Source of the DNA: Dimorphilus gyrociliatus
Lineage: Eukaryota > Animalia > Annelida
Direction of reading: 5' to 3'
Length of the DNA stretch: 35,143 nt
NCBI GenBank assembly: GCA_904063045.1
Contig: CAJFCJ010000082.1
Location: 56,056-91,198 of the forward strand
Below the pieces are notes generated by a model. It worked only from the letters and a program-made list of their open reading frames with translations. It searched no databases and had not been told where the DNA came from. Positions within the stretch are counted from its first letter, which is position 1, and the number at the start of each line of letters is the position of its first letter. The translations under genes were made by a program, and so were the position numbers. Below are positions 400 to 28,653 of this stretch, piece after piece.

Positions 400-765
400 T
401 AACCAAAGTTGTACAATATCATTGCTCCAAAATTTTACAGATTAAAATTTCAACTTGCAAAAAAAGAAAAATTTGCAGATTTGTTGCTATATTTTGAAGT
501 TACTTGGATTATGAACTCCATATGGAAACCAGAAAGTTGGTCTATATATGGATTATCCAAAAGGACTAAAACAGTGTGGAAGGTTGGCACAATAGAATGA
601 ATAGTAAAGTACTATCTAATGGATCATCTTATTGGCTGCTTGATGAACTGAAGAGAAAAATTGATTTAGTTAATATCTATGGAAAGCTCATATCTGAGAA
701 GAAGATTATATAGTACCAAAAAAAAGAGTCTATTGAGATAGAAACAATAATATTTGAAATTTAAG
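400..765 (+). pseudogene. Degenerate MULE transposase, 3' exon remnant
   Basis: ORF 409-600 has WIMNSIWKPESWSIYGLSKRT. A frameshift then continues (N)SVEGWHNRMNSK...LLDELKRKIDLVNIYGKLISEKK, matching the RTNNxxExWH catalytic-Glu segment of the other MULE copies. In-frame stops follow. Boundaries approximate. Confidence 0.85.
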
Positions 766-2404: not shown

Positions 2405-3040
2405 GTGAATTTGAAAAACTGTTGGAAGTGTGGATTAAGATTTCATTGGACACAAAGAAAATTCAGATTAAAGTTGTTCAGATATTTTTATCATTCAAAA
2501 TGTTCCAAATGTAAGTAAACTCTCTAACTTTCTCAGGTATAATGCTTTATCAGTTATATATTAAGATGCAGATTATTGTCCTGATTGTCATGATGTCAGC
2601 AAACAAAAATTATTTATTAAATTAAAGAAAATAGATAATTATCATCAGAGGAAAATTCATCAAGAATATGATGAAACCCTGATATTAATATGAAACCATC
2701 AATAGATAATGCAAGTGAAAGGAATACAAATCAGGTAATTTCGATTCTTAAAAAACATTATTATCTCACCCTAATTTTTAAGAGTTAAGACTTTCCTTTG
2801 ACTTTAATTCACCTGAATCACGAAACAATGAAAAAGAGTCGAACTTTCCTGAAGATGGACAAGGTATGGCCAAGAGAGTTGATATAAGTGATGAAACTTC
2901 ATTTGAGATGGATAAGCAGCATAACATCATGGAAACAGAAAGAGATGATTTCAAAATTGTTGTAGGTGGAAGTACCAAAAATAAAGACTTACTTCTAAAC
3001 AAAAATTGTTCATACTCTGTAAAAAGGAAAACAGAAAGTT
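2405..3040 (+). pseudogene. Degenerate MULE transposase 5' half (PHD-like exon, exon 2, start of FLYWCH)
   Basis: NLKNCWKCGLRFHWTQRKFR...FYHSKCS, then DADYCPDC, LRLSFDF and FKIVVGGSTKNKDLLLNKNCSYSVKRKTES. This is colinear with exons 1-3 of the intact element at 25851. Truncated inside FLYWCH. Confidence 0.85.
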
Positions 3041-4181
3041 TACATTTGCATTACTTCTTCCACAACCTTGATTGAACCATAAAATAAGTGACACATTCAG
3101 AAATTTGTATTTGAATTGTTTGATAAAGTTTCAAATGGAGGATAAAAAATGTTGAAAATATTAATAGAAAAATTATGTATAAAATCTGTGTTGAAAAAGA
3201 ACAAAAACAAAACATTTAAACTTACATTTATTAGTAAAAAAAAGTACAAATTTTCCATACCACAGTCGGGAAAGATCATTTGGGTAACAGCAGGAAAAAT
3301 TACTTTGGCTGTAAAGTTAGGGATTAGCATGAATCAACAGGTTTGGAATTGAAGCAGTATTATGGTAAATTCGCAAAACTGTTATTTTCTTAAGATTATA
3401 TATTACTAATAATGTCCTCTCTATTCATTAGAGATAAATGAAGAAGAAACAACCTCTGCAGATGAAGAGAATCTGTATGGGTTGTCTCTTTGGGAGGTTG
3501 TTTTCTGGAACACCCACAAAAAATTCTTCACGACTTTCTGACTCCTCCTCATCCTCCTAATCAACATAATTAGTTTTGTTTTTATCCATTTTTGCTATTC
3601 AAAATTCCTAATTCCTGTTCATTCTTGTTTCTTCAATGAAGAAAATCTATTTTTAATACTGGAAATGCTACTGTTCAATTTAAAAGTAATTTCAGCAGAT
3701 GTACATGAGAGTATTGTTATGGTTTTATAACAATACATTATAAAAACAGTAGTTATACATAGGCTACAATAAAACCTCTGATAAATTTCAATCCCATTAT
3801 CTATGCTCTTCTATGGGTTTTGATTCCCTGTTTAGTATTGGATTTAATGCTAAATTTCTAATGCCATTCTCTTTTCAATTATCAATATCTTGTTACAAAG
3901 ATAGACAAAAATGTGAATATTCTGATGATAATTTTTTAATTTGACAATTTTCTGCCTGAAGACAGATAATATATGTAAGTGAAACTGATTGTTACTGTAT
4001 CATTTTCTTTCCTCCTCTGCTTCTCCCTCTCTCTCTGTTTTCCAGACCTATTCAGTCAACAATTGAATTTGGAATTGTCTATTCAAGATTTAATCAAACT
4101 ACATATACTTTTTGTGTTGAAGATGAACAACTATTAAAGAAAATCTGCCAAAGAGTTTATTGGATAAATTACAGAAATAAA

Positions 4182-5890: not shown

Positions 5891-6480
5891 ATGGCTTTAA
5901 AATATAGTAATTGTGAATCAAAAATTTATGGAAGGCAAACATATTTGAAATGCTGACTTTGTGAGAATCTTATCCATAAAAAATGTTCAGGTATATTAGT
6001 TTTTAATTATGTTTTAGATAACTATATTTTGTTAACATATTGACACAGAAACACCTAGTATACCAGTTTGCACAACATGTAACAAATGAAAATGTACTAT
6101 TAGCCTTAAGATGTTAACTAATATGGAATTTGACCAATACCAAAAGAATAATAAGAATAACTTAAATGATGACAGAAGGATCACTCCTGCTGAATTTAAG
6201 GATTCAACTCTGGAACATGAAAATCCTGTACATTTAGTTAGCCAATCAATAGATCTAGACTGTTTGGAAGAAGTTGAGGGAAATGCAGAAGATGATAGTG
6301 ATTTAATCAGAAAGAATGATTTTGAGATTGTAAAAGGAGGGAGCAGAAAGGGACATGACATTCTTCTAAATGATGGATACTCTTTTGTTGTTAAACATAA
6401 AACATTTGCAAATTTGGGTGTGCAGTGTGAGAAATAAGAAGAAAAGATGTGTAGCTAGAATAAGACAAATGGTAATACAA
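5891..6480 (+). pseudogene. Degenerate MULE transposase 5' half (PHD-like finger + FLYWCH)
   Basis: MALK(Y)SNCESKIYGRQTYLKC*LCENLIHKKCS, GT donor at 5991, then PVCTTC. Later FEIVKGGSRKGHDILLNDGYSFVVK and, after a frameshift, WVCSVRNKKKRC. Confidence 0.85.
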
Positions 6481-13809: not shown

Positions 13810-14460
13810 TTCCGGGACATTTTGCCCCCTGGACATTTCATCCCCTTTGCCTTGACATAATATCCCTTTTGTATGGACATTTTTATGATTGGTCAGTAGA
13901 CCAATCTTCTTTTTAATCACTTTACCAGTTTTCTTAAGAGAATTTTTTCCCTTTTCTTATTTATGGAAAAGTCTTGTAGGAATATTTGATTTTTGGCTGG
14001 TGGGTTGATAGGAAATTTTTCCTGATGTCCACTTACAAGGCTGCTCTTTTCATTTTGAACAATCCATTTTAAGATATATTAAGGTATAATAATCTTTCTT
14101 ACAATTTTCATTTTCTCTAAATGTATGAATTTCTAAAAACTTTATTATATAAATGACTTCAAAGATAACAATTATGAAGGAAATATGTTGAGAAAGTTGA
14201 TGTGTCTACCATATCTTCCAAAATAATTCATTGCTTTCAAAATTTCACCAAATCAAGAATGAACTTTTAGAAAAGAATATATACTGCAATCTTGTGGAAT
14301 ATATTCAAAAAACTTATATTGATGGTAAGATTTGGATGCCAAAATTTTGGTCTGTCTACCAACTTCTTGTCAGAACAAACAATAAATGTTGAAGATTGGC
14401 ACACAAGATTAAATAGAGTGGTAGGAATTGATGAAATTTTTACAACCTTAATCAATTAAA
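13810..14460 (+). pseudogene. Degenerate MULE copy (last two transposase exons), preceded by ggacattt-cccc repeats
   Basis: PDVHLQGCSFHFEQSILRYIK with GT donor at 14084, then MLRKLMCLPYLP...WMPKFWSVYQLLVRTNN/(frameshift)VEDWHTRLNR. Close to exon 5 of the intact copy. Confidence 0.8.
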
Positions 14461-15035
14461 TACTAAAACTGTATTGATATTTGGTTATTCTGTGTTATGT
14501 GGATGCGACAGAAAACGTCCATGAAAGAAAACGTCCATGAAAGAAAACGTCCATAAACTGAAAGAAAACGTCCATGAACTGAAAGAAAACGTCCATAAAC
14601 TGAAAGAAAACAGCCATGAATCAAAAGAACACATAAAATAAAGAAATTTTCATTTAAATATAAATATATGTTGAAAAAAAATTAACACAAAACTTTAAAA
14701 AAACTGGTAGAAATGAAGAAATCTTCAGGAAAAGAGATACAAAATATCAACTTCCTCTTCTATTTTCACTCTCTTGAGGTAATATGAAATTTTTAATTTT
14801 TAGAGGTTTTTTTTGTTCTTAATAATCTCTGTGATTAAAAACTTATTGATTATTTTATTAATAATCAATCTAACATAAATTTAGCAATTTTATTTGTTAA
14901 TGAAGTTTTTTTTCAATGTTATTGTCAAAATACTAATTGTTACATAAATAATCATAATAATGATATGACAAATTCATTTATTAATTTTAGTTTAGCTCTT
15001 CTTTTTCTCCAATATTTTAGAAAAAATATTGAATA

Positions 15036-15133
15036 ATGGACAAGTGTTCTATTTGCAATGATAAATTTGTTGGTAGGCAAATAAAAGGCCAATGCTCATT
15101 GTGCCTGCATATTTGTCATATAAAATGTCTGCA
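15036..15133 (+). pseudogene. PHD-like finger exon 1 of the outer MULE transposase
   Basis: MDKCSICNDKFVGRQIKGQCSLCLHICHIKC has C-x2-C-x12-C-x2-C-x4-H-x2-C, the same spacing as exon 1 of the intact element. Confidence 0.8.
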
Positions 15134-15159
15134 TGGTTTGTACAGATTTGCTTGAATAT

Positions 15160-15606
15160 ATAGCTCTCTGAGAAATGGTCCGATCTTCTCTGATAAGCCT
15201 GTCAATTTCTTCTCTATTCTGACCTGTTACAGCTGTGCTTGGATGACCAGATCTTGCCAAATCTTCAAAATTTTTTCTTCCTTTTTTTATGTCAGATACC
15301 CACCTCCTTATTGAACTTTCACTCAGAGTTTCATCCCCACAAAAGCTTTTTAACTGCTTATAAATTTGTCTCGCAGACACCTTCTCATGCACTAAAAATG
15401 CTATGATTGGTCGTTGATTGGAACGTGTGCACATGACTTGCAGTTGCTTATACCAAAATAAATTTGTAATGCCTCAACAGAATCGAATGAAAGTTTGCAC
15501 AGTGAAAGTTTACTAATTTCCTAAGATTATTGGAAAGTATCAATGATATTAGTTAAGCCGTTTTAAAATTACAGCACAGTGACTGAAACTTTTCATTCGT
15601 ACCTAA
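15160..15606 (-). mobile_element. Mariner 5' half (TIR + HTH region), same family as 873-1822
   Basis: TIR ...cttttcattcgtacctaa ends at 15606, followed by TA. MCTRSNQRPIIAFLVHEKVSARQIY...SIRRW...FEDLARSGHP is a mariner HTH. The 3' half is missing; left boundary approximate. Confidence 0.88.
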
Positions 15607-15712
15607 TATGTATGCAGGACAAGGAGCTTTGGCATATCTCTGAGTACATCTCCAGGTGATTGAACTTTCAGTTTTTCTTTTTACTGAATATGAACAGTTT
15701 TTGTGTAGAAGA
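15607..15712 (-). pseudogene. Inverted FLYWCH fragment of the outer MULE transposase
   Basis: LLHKNCSYSVKRKTESSITWRCTQRYAKAPCPAYI on the minus strand stops exactly at the mariner TA. Opposite orientation to the other exons of the element. Confidence 0.85.
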
Positions 15713-15736
15713 TAGTACAAACCATATTCTTTCATT

Positions 15737-16614
15737 CAAATGTACTCTATTCATGTATTTTTGAACAAAAATGGACAGCTTAAGCAAGTTCCTTTGCTTT
15801 TTTCTTTTCTGTCTTCTAAAAAAAAGAGAGCATATAAACTACTTTTCCAGGTAAGAATTACATTTCATAAATATACTTACTAATAAGCAATCATGTTAAA
15901 TTTTTAAGGCTGTGAAGGATTTAGCTGAAAATTGTGCTCCTAAGAAAATAGTCTTAGACTATGAAAAGGCTGTTTGGAAAACTTTACAAAATATATGGCC
16001 TGATGCTGTCTTGACTGGATGTTCATTTCACTGGTCTCAGGCAATATTTAGAAAAATTCAGGTTTATTGATTTCTAAAATTTTTAACAATCCAATTAATT
16101 GTTTAAGGAACTTGGTTATAGCAGGGAATTTAGAAAAAAAGAGGGAGCTTGGGAATCCATGAGAATGATTATGTCTTTGCCATATTTGCCTCATGGCATG
16201 ATTGAAAATCAATTCACTAAAATTCAAAATCAACTGACAAAAGAAAATAAACTGTCTGATTTGTTGGACTATGTGTCTAATACTTGGATAAAAAATACAT
16301 TTTGGTCTCCAGAGACTTGGTCTGTTTTTGATCAAAGCATAAGGACAAATAATGATCTGGAAGGTTATCATCAAAGGCTGAATAAAATTGTTGGAGAAAA
16401 TGTTTCTTTTTATTTAGTGATTGATGAGTTAAAGAGGGAAGCAGACATGATAAATCTGTACAAAAAGCTTTTAAGTGAGAGAAAGATAATTAGACTTCAA
16501 AGGAAGACTTATAGCCAAATTCAAAAAGATCTTTTCTTAATTTGGGAAAATTTTAAAACAGGTGAAATTAATGCAAACCAGCTTCTGCAGCTTTGCTCAG
16601 AATTATATTATTGA
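15737..16614 (+). pseudogene. 3' part of the outer MULE transposase (partial exon 3 to 15850; exon 15909-16061; exon 16108-16614)
   Basis: MYSIHVFL...KQVPL (frameshifted); IVLDYEKAVW...GCSFHWSQAIFRKIQ; RTNNDLEGYHQRLN. The first catalytic Asp region is deleted. Confidence 0.9.
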
Positions 16615-16773: not shown

Positions 16774-18641
16774 GAGTTGGGGTGCGAACGTACCTGGGTG
16801 TGAACGTACCCGGGTGCGAACGTACCCTGGGCGGGTGCGAACGTACCTGGGTACGTTCGCACCCTATTTTTATATTTATTTTATTTTTGAATTTTTGAAT
16901 AAAAGATTTAGCTATAAATCTAAAAGTATGTATTTAAAAGACTAAATATTATACTAAAAAACAATAAAGCTTGACAAATGATATTTATGCTGGAGAGTAG
17001 ATATGGGATGTCTGCATTAATAGATCAATTGATGTCAATTTGTTCAACTTGAAATCATCCCATAAATCAAAAATTTTCTTTTGGATGTCAATATACTTTT
17101 TCTTTTGATGTTTGTAAATCCTTTTTTCTGACAGTAATTTCTCATAAACTGCAATCAACTCAGACTCTTTTTTTAGCTCATCAACCAGCATGTAAAAAGA
17201 ACCTTTAGCAGGCAGCTTACTATTCATTCTTTGATGCCATCCTTCACAATCATTATTGGTCCTAATAGACAAACCAAAAACTGACCAGTTATTTGGTTTC
17301 CATAATTTATTTTTGATCCAGTTTGTTTGGAAGTATTGCAGCAGGTCCAAAAATCTATTTTTTTCACAAAGTTCTGCATTTATGCTGTCAAATGTTGGTT
17401 GAATAATATGTGCTGGCAAGAATGGCAGAGCCATCAATTTTCTGAAATCTTTCCAATCATTTCCTTTTTCTTTGTATTTCTTTACATAGCCAAGAGCCTA
17501 TTCAATAATATAAGTTATTTAATAGATAATGTTATATATATTTGAATGTAACTGACTTGTATTTTCCTGTATACTGCTTGTGTGAAATGAAATACACAAC
17601 CTTGAAATTCAGTGAGGGGATATACTTTTGATAATGCTTTCCATAGTCCTTTTTCAAAATCCATTGTAATTCTTTTTGGATGAAAATCATTGATAAGATT
17701 GTTGATATGCTACAAAAAAGCAACTTTATTTATCATCACTTTTGAAGAGATAATATGAAATATTTACTTGAAATGCTTGTAAGTATGCTTTGGTATGCTT
17801 TGAAGTCAGAAAAATAAAAACAAGAGGAACTTGCTTCATATCACCACTCTTCTTAACAAATGAGTGAATAGTGACAAGTTGATAAAATGGTTCTTTTACA
17901 ATCTTGAAAGTACCATCAATGTACCAACAGTTGGATTTTGATAATAAATTCAGCTGATGGTTTGTTGCAAAGATTAAAATTCTTTCTCCATTTTCACAAA
18001 TATCTTTCTGCAAAAATTCATCAGGCAAAAATGTTTCATCTAAATTAAAGTTGTACACTTTAGGTTCCAATGGTTATCTAAAAATATTTCCAGTTATCAA
18101 TAAATTTCCTTTCCAAATATTCAAAATGGCTGAAATTTTATTTATGAAAAATATTCAGCTTTTTCACAATTGAAGATAGTATATTACATCAAAATATCAT
18201 GAATCAACAATCTCAATGATTAGATATAAATACTCACTTCTGTTGAAGCTTCCAAGAAGAACTTTGTCCAAATTTATTCAGTAAATATAGCTTTACTTTT
18301 GCAAGGATAAATATTCCAAGTGAAAGTTTATTTAATAAAACTATCACTATTAAAATGGCTGCTATTTCACTTTCAACAACATTTTCTTTTAAAGTAGTAA
18401 TTTAATATTGATGGGATATGTATTCTATTTAATATCTGCATTCTATCAAATCAATATATTAACAAATATATAATGAAGGAACAGAAGGAAAAAAGGGTGT
18501 CAATGTACATGTTTATTCAAAAATTCAAAAATAAAATAAATATAAAAATAGGGTGCGAACGTACCTGGGTACGTTCGCACCCGCCCAGGGTACGTTCGCA
18601 CCCGGGTACGTTCGCACCCAGGTACGTTCACACCCGACCCC
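16774..18641 (-). mobile_element. Inner MULE, 1868 bp, 5'-deleted transposase, nested in the outer MULE
   Basis: Perfect 9-bp TSD AAAAAGTTT at 16765-16773 and 18642-18650. ~130-bp TIRs built from gggtgcgaacgtacc units. Confidence 0.95.
16985..18070 (-). CDS. Truncated MULE transposase of the inner element (exons 17768-18070, 17557-17709, 16985-17497)
   Basis: The spliced frame is open and keeps WYIDGTF, TMDFEKG, GCVFH and RTNNDCEGWH. It lacks PHD/FLYWCH and an ATG start; an in-frame TAA lies just upstream of 18070. Confidence 0.85.
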
Positions 18642-24220: not shown

Positions 24221-25553
24221 GTCTGCAAATGAACACTTTATATTTCTTCGCAATAAATACAGAGGGCGCTGATAATAAAAAAAAACCACTCACAAAAAAT
24301 CTATTAAATTTGTTAATGAAATTGGGTTGAAAACTGGTATTGTTTTGTACTTAGAGTGGCTTATAGTATATTTGTACATATTTAGGTTGTTAATGTACAC
24401 TGAACACTACTCTCACCAACATACTATACACTTTTGGCATACACTCAAATTGTTACATATCATTCATTGATAAAACTACAATATTGTAGTACAAGTGTTG
24501 AGCAGTGGTCTACATTCCCAATCTACAACTTGGACTATTCTTTAAACTACTTCTAACTTCAAATATTAAACTAATGAACATATACATAATATCTAATGAA
24601 TATTAGTTGTATCTGCTCTATTAAATCTCAAATCTCCAATACTTTATAATAGATATTTAATTGTTGGAATAGCCAATCTACATATAACCAGAGTATAAAA
24701 TGGATAAGCAGCTTATTAATAAAAAATATGGCGATTGCGATGACTCTTCTTCCTTGCTGCTGCTATTGGAATCATTTCCTGTATCTTTACCATCCTGCTT
24801 TATTGTCAAAGCTCTTCTTTTTGCATTTCTATTATCCTTTTCTAGTCTGATTTTCTTTTTCTTTTCAATAGATGATTTGGAACAAAGGCTGCCTCTGATT
24901 CTTTTAGACTGTAGCGTTTAACTTTTCTTTATCAACTGTGATTAGATTGTGAAGTAACCTCTCTTCCTTACCATGATCAGGAAATGATAAAAATTTACGC
25001 AAGCCAAGAACCAAGATTAGCCTGTCTGGATTTTTGTTGTTTTGATATGGAACAAAAGTTGTTCTATGTTACATTTTAAATAGCTGACCATTGAGGCACG
25101 GGACGGGTGCAAATCCACCACAAAAATCTGATCAAGATGGAAGAGTTACAGTTAACGCGAGACGGAATAAAAATGTATTAAAAAATTCAACTCAACTATC
25201 AGTTTTGGCAATTTGCCAAAATTCAATTTATATTAAAAAGTTTAATCATTATTTCCCTAATTTAATATCCTTATCACTCATTAATAATAAGTAACATTCC
25301 TTATCCTTACTTTCTTAAGTATTTCAGTCTGGATGCCATTTTTAATTTTAAGTTTGTGTATGTCAATTATGAAGTCATCCTTTGTTATTATTCTCTCTCT
25401 CTCTCAGTCCTTTTAGATTATTTTCATAGCAGCCTTATCTATTAGATAATTAGATTAATTAAGATTTATTAGTCTTTAAACTATTATTGGTCAAATACAT
25501 ATGCCACAGTCAGGAAAATTCACTCACTATTGACCCAGTCATAGTGTTATTAG

Positions 25554-28223
25554 GGGGTCGGGTCAGAACGCCCCAGGTCAGTACGCCCCAGGTCAGAACG
25601 CCCCAATTTTGGGTCAGAACGCCCCATTCTTGATTTTGAACGCCCCACTCATGAGTCAGAACGCCCCACTCTCTTTAGAGAATTATAGAAAACAATGCTG
25701 AGAGAAAAATATTCTTATATACCAGTTATTATAAATATTTTTACCAGTTTTTTTTTTATCAGTTTATTCTCAGAAATTGTGTTGCTTAAATATAATTCAT
25801 CTTAGTATAATTAATTTTTTTGCTGTTAATGTCTCACTGAAAAAAGGAGGATGAATTTAAAAACTTGTTGGAAATGTATGAAGAAGTTTCATTGGACTCA
25901 AAAGAAGTTTAGATGCAAATTATGTAGGCACTTTTACCATGCTAAATGTTCAAATAGTAAGATTTTATTCTTTAATATTTCTTTTCTATTTAACCATTTC
26001 CTCAGATGCAGATTATTGTATAGACTGTTTTAATATAAAAAACAAAAAGCTAATTGTTAAAATAAAAAAGCTGGAAAACAAAAAATCACCAACATGTTCA
26101 AAAGTATTTGGAAATGAAACTGTTAGTGAAAGTTCAAGTTCCGAACAGGTACAAAATATTTAACAAATATCTGTTAAAAAAACTATTTAATGTTTTACTA
26201 TAGCTGAGGTTATCTTTTGACTTTGAATCTAATTTCCCTGATGTTTCAAGTACTCCAGGGAATAATGGAATGGAGAGTTGTGATAAAGATATTGATATTG
26301 ATAATGATGGAATTTCAAGAGAAGATCAACATCAACCTGCTAAAATTGTTACAGAAAATAGTCCAGTTGTAAGAAGAATTGATATAAATAATGAATCTTC
26401 TTTTAATGATACAAGAGAGCTTTGTCTAAATGATAATTTAAAACATGATTTTGAAATATTTAAGAATGGGAGCAGAAAAGGAAAAGATATTCTTCTTCAC
26501 AATAATTTTACTTATACTGTAAAAAGATCAAGTGAAACAACCATTACCTGGAAATGTAGTCAAAGAACTAAAAAATCACCATGTCTTGCATCTGTAATTC
26601 AAAAAGATTTAAAGTTCATTTTGAAAAATTCTAATCACATTCACAAAAGAGAGAAAAATGATATGAGAAAAATTATTGAAGCAAGGTTAAATTTAAAGGA
26701 AGCTGCAATTATTGATAAAGACAAATCTGGTAAAAGAATTGCAGAAGATATCAGTCTGAAGTTCAGAAAGGATATTTCTCATATTCCAAGCATTGATGTC
26801 ATGAAAAGATCTGCTAATAGATACAGAGAAGGTGCCAGACCAAAGCACCCAGAAAACATTATGTTTGAATTAAATTTAAATGAAATTCCAGATAATTTTT
26901 TCTTAAAAGATATAAAAGGGAAGAAAAGCCGAAACATGATGTTTGCAACTGACCATCAAATTAAATTATTGAAACATTGTAAGATATGGTTTATTGATGC
27001 CACATTTAAAATTGTGAGAAAACCTTTTTACCAATTGTTTACAATTCATGGATTTATAAGAAAAGAAGGTGAATATAAACAAGTTCCTTTAATGTTTGTC
27101 CTCATGACAGGAAAGAAGAAGAAACATTATTCATTGATATTTGAGGTTGGCTTTCTAAAGTAAATATTTGAGTAAAAATTCTAAAGATATATTTTTCTTT
27201 ACAAGGAGTTAAAAATCTTAATAGATGGAAAAAGCCCAAAAAAGTTTGTTCTTGATTTTGAAAAAGCTCTTTGGATATCTTTAAAAAATGCTTTTGTTGA
27301 TTCTGATCTACAAGGATGTGCTTTTCATTTTAAACAAGCAATTCTTAAAAACATACAGGTAAATTAAAGTAATTATAACAATTCTGTTACAGATTTAATT
27401 TGTGAAATTAAGAAATTAACAAATACAAATTTTCTTTTTAGAAATTAGGATACATCAAGGACTATAAAATGAAAGGTTATAAAGGAAATGTGTTAAGAAA
27501 ACTAATGTGTCTAGCATACTTACCAGCATCATTCATCAAACAAAAGTTTTATCAAATTAAAGAGGAACTTTTGGAACTGAATTTATATGCTGATCTTCTT
27601 GAGTATATGGAATCTACTTACATTGAAAGCAATATTTGGAAACCAGAAAATTGGTCAGTTTATAAATTAATAGTTCGTACAAATAATCATGTAGAGTCTT
27701 GGCACACAAGAATCAATCAAAATTTGAAAAGCAATGAAAACTTTTATACTCTTATCACTGAACTTCATAGAGAAAGCAGCCTTATTGAAGTTTATGAGGA
27801 TATGTTGGTGGAAAATAAAATGAGACAGAATCAGAAGAATAAATATAAAGATTTGCAGGATATTATCTTTGAGTTGTGGAAGAAGTTTGAAGTAAGAGAA
27901 TTAAGTTTAGATAATCTCTTAAAGGGTTTAATTGACTTGAACATTGCTTGAAAAATTATTTCTTTTTTTGTGATCACTTATTATATTTGTTTAAGCTTTT
28001 GTACTTTAAGACAAAAAATACATTATGCATATATATTTTTATATTCAATTGACTTTTTTTAATTTAATAAGTACAGCATTAAAAAATATTATGTTCTTCA
28101 AAAATCAGTGGGGCGTTCTGACTCATGAGTGGGGCATTCGAAATCAAGAATGGGGCGTTCTGACCCAAAATTGGGGCGTTCTGACCTGGGGCGTACTGAC
28201 CAGGGGCGTTCTGACCCTAAGCC
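25554..28223 (+). mobile_element. Intact, probably autonomous MULE (Phantom-like) element, 2670 bp
   Basis: 117-bp TIRs (25554-25670, 28107-28223) made of ggtcagaacgcccc units. Direct repeat GTGTTATTAG at 25544-25553 and 28224-28233: a 10-bp TSD, or 9 bp if the left end starts at 25553. Confidence 0.95.
25851..27951 (+). CDS. MULE DDE transposase with N-terminal PHD-like finger and FLYWCH domain, 5 exons, 617 aa
   Basis: Exons 25851-25956, 26006-26148, 26204-27145, 27206-27358 and 27442-27951; GT-AG, phase-compatible, no internal stop (1854 nt). Motifs: CWKC-x12-CKLC-x4-H-x2-C...CIDC; FLYWCH FTY...TWKCSQR...C...HIH; WFIDATF; VLDFEKAL; GCAFH; RTNNHVESWH. Confidence 0.93.
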
Positions 28224-28458
28224 GTGTTATTAGCTTTCATAAAACACAAGAATTATGTCTATTGGACTTTGCCACATCCTCTTACTAAACATAGACTAGA
28301 GCATTCATCAACTGCAAATTGATGATTGGATAACATCAACTAACTGAAGAGTCTAAAAAACTCTTGCAGTTTTCATTCTAATCAGCTATCCCTATCTCTA
28401 TCTCTACCTCCCAATCTGGCCAGTTTCAAAGCATATTTTTTATACACGGAAAATTGAA

Positions 28459-28653
28459 AGTTGCGACAGAAAACGTCCTGAAACCCTAACCCTAACCTAG
28501 CCCTTGTCATTTCTTTACCATGTTTATCACCCATAACCCTTAGATGGGTTGTCCTTAAGTACAGATGAGTGGCCGTCTTATTCCTCTTAACCATATTTCA
28601 ACCCAAAATCTTATCCCGAAATATGTCATCCGAGGACATTTTCTGTCGATCCC
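28459..28653 (+). mobile_element. MITE copy D (best preserved, 195 bp)
   Basis: Ends agttgcgacagaaaacgtcc and ggacattttctgtcgatccc match the outer MULE TIR. Internal ccctaaccctaacc. The flanking 9-mers aaaattgaa / gaatttgga match 6 of 9, a possible decayed TSD. Confidence 0.85.

Follow-up and report, generated by a model that had tools for sequence, protein, structure and literature searches.

A probably very recently active Phantom-type Mutator element of Dimorphilus gyrociliatus whose transposase begins with a compact, putatively PHD-derived finger

In the annelid Dimorphilus gyrociliatus, a 35,143-nt stretch of contig CAJFCJ010000082.1 (assembly GCA_904063045.1, positions 56,056 to 91,198 of the forward strand; hereafter the window) contains a 2,670-bp element that we judge likely to be an autonomous cut-and-paste DNA transposon of the Mutator superfamily, Phantom-type in layout, very recently active, and encoding a transposase whose compact N-terminal finger descends from a PHD finger. 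The novelty lies in this compact, highly conserved finger and in the intact young family; the underlying layout of PHD, FLYWCH and MULE domains is already widespread and machine-annotated. The window is eukaryotic in character and AT-rich, with a G+C content of 29%. Database proteins nearest to the transposase are D. gyrociliatus gene models, and one of these agrees with the assembly at 97%.

Copies, ends and target sites

Copies of the element were sought across the 77.9-Mb, 349-contig D. gyrociliatus assembly, and at least seven full-length ones were found at separate loci, with 98.8–100% identity and separate target-site duplications, besides truncated copies. Their differing flanks and duplications ruled out assembly duplicates as an explanation. 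One copy (L002) is identical to the window copy over all 2,670 bp and lies at another site within a different duplication, the frames, ends and duplications of both being intact, and the four closest copies diverge by no more than 0.2%. Each of the six other full-length copies is flanked by a perfect 9-bp duplication of its own sequence, which fixes the ends of the element as GGGGTC...AAGCC. These fixed ends demand 10 bp for the window copy, whose duplication (GTGTTATTAG) is likewise perfect, and a strict 9-bp duplication was therefore ruled out there. The window copy sits within a diverged repeat, a related copy of which (L039) is uninterrupted and contains the 10-bp target once; the comparison of copies and this empty site together demonstrate recent transposition and the exact boundaries of the element. 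According to the published genome analysis, D. gyrociliatus has DNA transposons of the Mariner and MULE kinds, and the age of its transposons is either old or that of "very recent bursts" (PMC7854359).

The terminal inverted repeats of about 118 nt show 94% complementarity, with five internal mismatches besides the differing outermost bases. Read inward, the latter are GGGGTCG at the left and GGCTTAG at the right, an asymmetry that is the same in all seven full copies. Both ends consist of the 15-nt unit GGTCAGAACGCCCCA in six copies per end, three of them abutting at 15-nt spacing and the remainder following at 21-nt spacing. These end subrepeats are the only tandem arrays inside the element, and no minisatellite was found before the 3' inverted repeat. 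Long inverted repeats and duplications of 9 bp (six copies) and 10 bp (window copy) agree with the Mutator superfamily, in which duplications measure 8–11 bp and usually 9.

Gene model and catalytic core

The transposase is encoded in five exons (Table 1), which were handled singly in the searches and domain scans, protein residue numbers being derived arithmetically. Its 617 codons comprise 82 that lie wholly in exons 1–2, one split by intron 1, and then 314, 51 and 169. The introns (49, 55, 60 and 83 nt) all begin with GT and end with AG, their phases are compatible, and the frame is continuous across the five exons. FLYWCH (PF04500), a finger of WRKY-GCM1 type, was detected at exon 3 residues 90–147 with 39.9 bits against a cutoff of 23.6, with the ligands W-K-C, C and H-I-H. 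The Pfam MULE domain (PF10551) is cut by intron 3, so that exon 3 covers profile positions 1–50 (16.0 bits) and exon 4 positions 59–98 (22.3 bits), neither piece reaching the cutoff of 27.6 bits alone; homologues with 36–43% identity pass it at 34–50 bits. Counting both pieces, these homologues and the DDE residues, the protein has the MULE DDE domain of the Mutator superfamily. In this RNase H-like core, the catalytic residues D348, D414 and E533 are spaced by 66 and 119 residues, the former value falling inside the published D–D range of 60–76 and the latter at the lower edge of the D–E range of about 120–135 (PMC13359780). After the second Asp, the C/D-x2-H motif typical of Mutator appears as G-C-A-F-H at residues 434–438 and is kept in siblings. 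An exhaustive search with exon 3 returned 3,247 homologues. For the modelled core of a sibling protein, P0085, the structural matches are ISCth4, a transposase of the IS256 family (Z 7.2), and integrase cores, and Foldseek with the whole P0085 model returned integrase cores only.

The original prediction, made from the letters of the window, had described an apparently active element with near-identical inverted repeats, a perfect target-site duplication and an open spliced frame of 617 residues containing DDE and CxxH (here C435-x2-H438). Each of these features is borne out, and the claim of activity is supported by two identical intact copies, seven distinct duplications and the empty related site.

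The N-terminal finger as part of the transposase

The finger pattern that had been read from exons 1–2 is exact in all eight ligands (C6, C9, C22, C25, H30, C33, C40 and C43), which are spaced C-x2-C-x12-C-x2-C-x4-H-x2-C-x6-C-x2-C. They form the C4HC3 set of a PHD finger, which would be a two-zinc module within the first 43 residues, and are invariant in the sibling families examined. Exon 1 is present at least 55 times in the D. gyrociliatus genome, in many diverged sibling families, among which it retains 73–85% amino acid identity and, with exon 2, all eight ligands, against 41–52% identity in exon 3 and 54–67% in exons 4–5. When the siblings are aligned as nucleotides, conservation sets in exactly at the ATG with a codon pattern, collapses in both introns, whose lengths differ, and returns at the acceptors, with GT and AG invariant. 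Intron phases and both intron positions in the finger are likewise kept, including the phase-1 intron after H-x2-C. Nonsynonymous divergence (dN) is 0.09–0.17 in exon 1, where synonymous divergence (dS) is saturated, and 0.23–0.38 in the catalytic exon 4. By these comparisons, selection constrains the finger more strongly than the catalytic exons, and no other part of the protein is as well conserved in D. gyrociliatus.

The P0002 family retains intron 1 at the same place and in the same phase, and intron 2 is absent, so that a single exon of 369 codons contains the last Cys pair, FLYWCH and the first Asp. A family lacking intron 1 was also sought, and every long open frame encountered was an in-frame retained intron containing stops. 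The joining of exons 1–2 to exon 3, which had also been predicted, is thus supported by conservation, splice sites, phases and the exon structure of P0002, and exons 1–2 appear to belong to the transposase.

Descent of the finger from PHD

The relation of the finger to PHD rests on its homology to canonical N-terminal fingers and on a sibling model that matches PHD fingers only. Among the best 150 of the 3,247 exon 3 homologues, 18 carry C-x2-C-x11-13-C-x2-C-x4-H-x2-C, seventeen of them starting it at residues 2–16 and the other, a long protein, at residue 62; in most, the second loop has 21–25 residues and the motif reads C-D-x-C-x2-W-x-H-R-x-C. When sixteen of these homologues are combined into a profile, it matches the PHD finger of Pygopus (E 8.8e-9) and PHD3 of MLL1 (E 6.5e-6), and the clusters returned by the protein atlas are PHD and PHD_Pygo. 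The canonical relatives score below threshold for PF00628 (17.6–20.9 bits) yet carry the precomputed annotation PF27108 (PHD_Pygo). Aligned with the canonical N-termini, the exon 1 profile runs from the Met to the sixth ligand (hhalign E 3.4e-5, probability 72%), with six ligands and one Gln in register. Conversely, when the 755 open frames in the window are ranked by the canonical finger profile, exon 1 comes first (E 2e-4), followed by the finger of another Mutator remnant; the same profile recovers P0004, a D. gyrociliatus protein of intermediate type, at E 3e-6.

A tree built on the region from FLYWCH to MULE unites the D. gyrociliatus families in one clade (support 99), and the canonical PHD bearers are scattered over the remainder, some adjoining the Dimorphilus clade; this position makes the short second loop a derived state of the lineage. 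Between ligands 6 and 7 that loop has 6 residues here and 5–8 in siblings, compared with 21–25 in canonical relatives, and is thus shorter than the 12 or so residues expected at minimum of a PHD finger. In the AlphaFold model of P0085, a natural sibling with a compact finger, the predicted local distance difference test score (pLDDT) is about 73 for residues 1–30 and 50–60 for residues 31–60. In a structure search with the model, independent of Foldseek, residues 1–57 paired only with PHD fingers among the 50 matches listed, at Z 4.8–5.9, in a range (below 8) where a match can reflect a common arrangement. They include BPTF (Z 5.9), Pygo (Z 5.9, root-mean-square deviation 2.3 over 55), ARID5, DPF2, MLL1 PHD3 and MLL4 PHD6, the Pygopus matches comprising Drosophila and human proteins. 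Sequence and model together support the view that the compact finger is PHD-derived, a Pygopus/MLL-type finger whose second loop would have shrunk from 21–25 to 6 residues. The prediction had called it a PHD/FYVE-like finger; the PHD part stands through relatives and the P0085 model, and the finger's own sequence falls below Pfam thresholds and finds no significant structure match.

As a separate observation, the canonical transposase finger (P0142, P0020, P0133 and relatives) is nearer to the Pygopus PHD than to any other solved PHD, the two sharing H-R-x-C-x-T-G, a Tyr in the loop helix, and W-x-C-x2-C.

Comparison with known systems

The Phantom subclass of Mutator is defined by the combination of FLYWCH and MULE (Marquez and Pritham, 2010, via PMC3169594 and PMC6446971). 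As described there, Phantom resembles the present element in having an N-terminal FLYWCH followed by a MULE DDE domain, 8–10-bp duplications, animal hosts, and variable inverted ends that are sometimes built from repeats. The descriptions consulted name FLYWCH or SWIM only and no PHD ahead of FLYWCH, whereas the element has one. The comparison with Phantom was thus made by description, and on the domain level it holds, FLYWCH standing N-terminal to MULE. That FLYWCH lies behind the finger and that FLYWCH with MULE is established for Phantom had both been anticipated correctly (for the latter, PMC3169594), as had the occurrence of PHD fingers in some Mutator groups. The latter include Rehavkus, with a PHD finger, a 9-bp duplication and 26–400-bp inverted ends in annelids and arthropods (Repbase; PMC6446971), and MULE proteins in which PHD fingers were noted at the C-terminus in 2006 (PMC1702500). 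Rehavkus, also compared by description, shares with the element a transposase-borne PHD finger and annelid hosts; it differs in its minisatellite before the 3' end, of which the element has none, and FLYWCH is not reported for it, whereas the element has FLYWCH. Muta1 of Aedes aegypti is an animal MULE that has been shown to transpose (PMC5499845); it belongs to a different family and offers a model for an activity assay.

The closest likeness in domain order is found in uncharacterised shrimp, bivalve, tubeworm and amphioxus proteins (Palaemon, Oratosquilla, Mytilus, Saccostrea, Lamellibrachia and Branchiostoma), whose precomputed Pfam annotation lists PF27108 (PHD_Pygo), FLYWCH and MULE in the same order, with the finger at the very N-terminus. 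Their core identity to the element is 25–47%, with six ligands in register; they have the canonical loop of 21–25 residues with a helix and W-x-C, whereas the loop of the element has 6 residues and its Trp is replaced by Phe. No description of an N-terminal PHD ahead of FLYWCH was found in the literature searched, including a 2026 survey of arthropod MULEs. The predicted distinctiveness of the architecture is accordingly narrowed: PHD, FLYWCH and MULE together are widespread and automatically annotated, and it is the short second loop that is limited to the Dimorphilus clade. Within that clade, the siblings (DgyrCDS14525, 14435 and 14653; L014, L029 and L031) resemble the element in their compact finger with a loop of 5–8 residues, the same phase-1 intron after H-x2-C, ends made of 15-nt repeats, and membership of one tree clade. 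They differ in their core, which is 41–66% identical to that of the element, and in their end motifs, and most of their copies are degraded, whereas the element is intact and multi-copy at 98.8–100%.

Among solved structures, the PHD finger of Pygopus and PHD3 of MLL1 (4up0, 2vpe and 3lqh) are the best matches of the canonical transposase finger, at the E-values given above, and they also match the compact P0085 model (Z 4.9–5.9). Some annotated gene models, P0005 (2,396 residues), P0007 (1,155 residues) and P0001 (1,885 residues, with nine matched stretches), combine Mutator transposase segments with unrelated stretches or with more than one transposase copy, and are probably chimeric predictions over nested elements.

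Weighing the alternatives

Several observations tell against the account given above, and they concern mobility, the gene model and the fold of the finger. Four of the six other full-length copies are frameshifted, L003 and L004 by single-base indels, some of which may be assembly errors, and L005 and L006 by a common 22-bp deletion (L007 has an in-frame 3-bp deletion). Together with the weak donor of intron 3 (GTTGGC) and the small number of short non-autonomous derivatives seen, these lesions would suit a family that is no longer mobile, its near-identical copies being left from an ended burst or its transposase being inactive. That outcome is unlikely in the light of two copies at different sites that are identical over their whole length with everything intact, and of the minimal divergence among the four closest copies; this complete Mutator element is very probably still mobile. 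With regard to the gene model, a word search with exon 3 found no near-identical protein and hence no transcript-derived support for the junctions. Moreover, conservation among siblings is poor in the latter half of exon 2, as might be the case if exons 1–2 lay outside the transposase messenger, as a separate small gene or an untranslated leader. This is scarcely credible given the coding-type conservation, the splice sites and phases kept across families, the continuous frame and the P0002 family without intron 2; in addition, the finger stands in one protein with FLYWCH and MULE both in annotated D. gyrociliatus models and in relatives from other phyla that lack introns. The remaining difficulties concern the fold. 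Exon 1 alone, which holds only part of a finger that spans an intron, reaches no Pfam threshold for PHD: its sub-threshold matches are FYVE (17.3 bits, cutoff 27.8), PHD_NSD (16.2 bits, cutoff 23.9) and RING, PF00628 being absent from the list. Its family profile finds nothing significant among solved structures, the best being C1 (E 0.11) and FYVE (E 1.6), and two of the three annotated compact fingers (P0002 and P0085) score nothing significant with the profile of canonical PHD fingers. In place of the canonical cage Trp the element has Phe, and it lacks the aromatic residue ahead of the first Cys; the P0085 model is that of a sibling, lacks zinc, has an alignment that contained canonical PHD sequences, and gives the finger moderate confidence. 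Since the spacing as far as the seventh ligand is also nearly C1-like, one might think of an independently acquired or convergent zinc module of C1, FYVE or RING type. We consider such an origin improbable: the extreme N-terminal position is equal in homologous transposases, with the six ligands and the Gln in register, P0004 scores as an intermediate, PHD bearers lie around the compact clade in the tree, and the 50 matches listed for the P0085 model include no C1, FYVE or RING domain. A C1 domain as such was ruled out, as the five residues ahead of the first Cys leave no space for its N-terminal His.

With descent from PHD as the preferred reading of its origin, the finger can be considered for its function. 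The FLYWCH finger would read the 15-nt end repeats, and the compact PHD would serve as an accessory targeting or regulatory module that binds chromatin or a protein partner, possibly a histone tail. In its fullest form, this proposal holds that, in a large animal Mutator clade, a Pygopus/MLL-type PHD acts as a chromatin reader choosing the landing site, the Dimorphilus version being a minimal two-zinc module of about 45 residues that steers insertion into transposon-rich closed chromatin; so stated, it is speculative and we would not expect it to be correct, and a direct common origin of the Pygopus PHD finger and the transposase fingers would be its bolder corollary. The fingers of Pygopus and MLL1 PHD3 are host chromatin readers that bind methylated H3K4; they have a long second loop and a full aromatic cage, whereas the compact finger lacks the loop and part of the cage. 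A histone-reader role may apply, and the case for a DNA-binding role is at least as easily made. The compact finger would then be a second DNA-binding module for the element's own subterminal repeats or for target DNA, without chromatin reading, an idea that we regard as doubtful but worth serious attention. Six ordered 15-nt repeats per end are more than one FLYWCH finger obviously needs, siblings swap the 15-mer and retain the layout, the finger is very basic, as is the helix behind it, the loop used by Pygopus for its partner is deleted with the cage Trp replaced, and the cross-brace cysteine-rich domain of the piggyBac transposase provides a DNA-recognising precedent. However, the finger keeps 73–85% identity among families in which one third of the end-repeat positions have changed, and its ancestors, Pygopus/MLL-type PHD fingers, are peptide binders.

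End repeats and insertion sites

The sibling family L029 (G000:C76:179415-183691; ends at 1032–1107 and 3513–3651) has the same 15/21-nt layout with another 15-mer, GGGACAATTCGGCCT, which points to co-evolution of the ends and the DNA-binding surface. That the finger is nearly constant between families with different ends argues against its setting end specificity, and favours a role common to all families, such as the recognition of a chromatin mark or of a host or transposase partner.

Other MULE fragments surround, or come within 1.5 kb of, five of the seven full copies: L003 (G000:C5:87287-92956) interrupts exon 4 of another Mutator element beside its Q-G-C-x-x-H motif, and L004, L006 and L007 have Mutator fragments within 1.5 kb. 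The window is itself a transposon island with at least six degraded FLYWCH-MULE fragments of other families, recognisable N-terminal fingers being retained in two of them (2405–2506 and 15036–15128), and it fits the published remark that the transposons of this genome cluster in gene-free, closed-chromatin islands. Such nesting would fit targeting to transposon-rich closed chromatin; it equally fits selection, harmless insertions being those that survive in a compact, gene-dense genome, and selection alone would explain it. Telomere-type CCCTAA repeats occur at 28466–28500, some 250 nt beyond the right end of the element.

Table 1. Features of the element and its surroundings (window coordinates)
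Feature	Position	Strand	Basis
Whole autonomous Mutator-like (Phantom-type) element, 2,670 bp	25554..28223	+	Seven or more full-length copies that share their ends and differ in their flanks
Target-site duplication, left copy, GTGTTATTAG, 10 bp	25544..25553	.	Flank comparison; single target in related empty site L039
Target-site duplication, right copy, GTGTTATTAG, 10 bp	28224..28233	.	Flank comparison; L039
Left terminal inverted repeat, about 118 nt	25554..25671	+	Pairing with right end
Right terminal inverted repeat, mirrored subrepeats	28106..28223	-	Pairing with left end
Six subterminal copies of GGTCAGAACGCCCCA, presumed transposase binding sites	25561..25672	+	
TATAAATA, putative promoter element, 114 nt 5' of ATG	25730..25737	+	Read from sequence
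Exon 1, 35 codons + 1 base; start codon; ligands C6, C9, C22, C25, H30, C33	25851..25956	+	
Exon 2; C40, C43 (26017-26028), conserved basic helix-like stretch, then poorly conserved linker	26006..26148	+	
Exon 3, 314 codons; linker, FLYWCH finger (26471-26644), first half of MULE core, D348 (26996-26998)	26204..27145	+	
Exon 4, 51 codons; second half of Pfam MULE, D414 (27254-27256), C435-x2-H438 (27317-27328)	27206..27358	+	
Exon 5, 169 codons (to 27948) + TGA; E533 (27694-27696)	27442..27951	+	
Degraded FLYWCH-MULE fragment	421-707		
Degraded FLYWCH-MULE fragment	2405-3039		
Degraded FLYWCH-MULE fragment	6312-6434		
Degraded FLYWCH-MULE fragment	14018-14545		
Degraded FLYWCH-MULE fragment	15036-16590		
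Degraded FLYWCH-MULE fragment	17018-18094		

Significance

The element provides a clean test case for whether a DNA transposase uses a domain of the histone-reader type to choose or avoid chromatin, and its compact finger gives a measure of how short a PHD finger can become and still be kept by selection. The ends of L029 and of the other siblings form a natural series on the co-evolution of transposase and end repeats. Should the chromatin-reader proposal be true, it would describe a safe-haven strategy of the kind known from chromodomain retrotransposons, with a parallel in the PHD finger of RAG2. If active, the element would belong to a very small number of intact Mutator elements in animals, its host being a small spiralian kept in laboratory culture, and would be a candidate for insertional mutagenesis or transgenesis in D. 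gyrociliatus.

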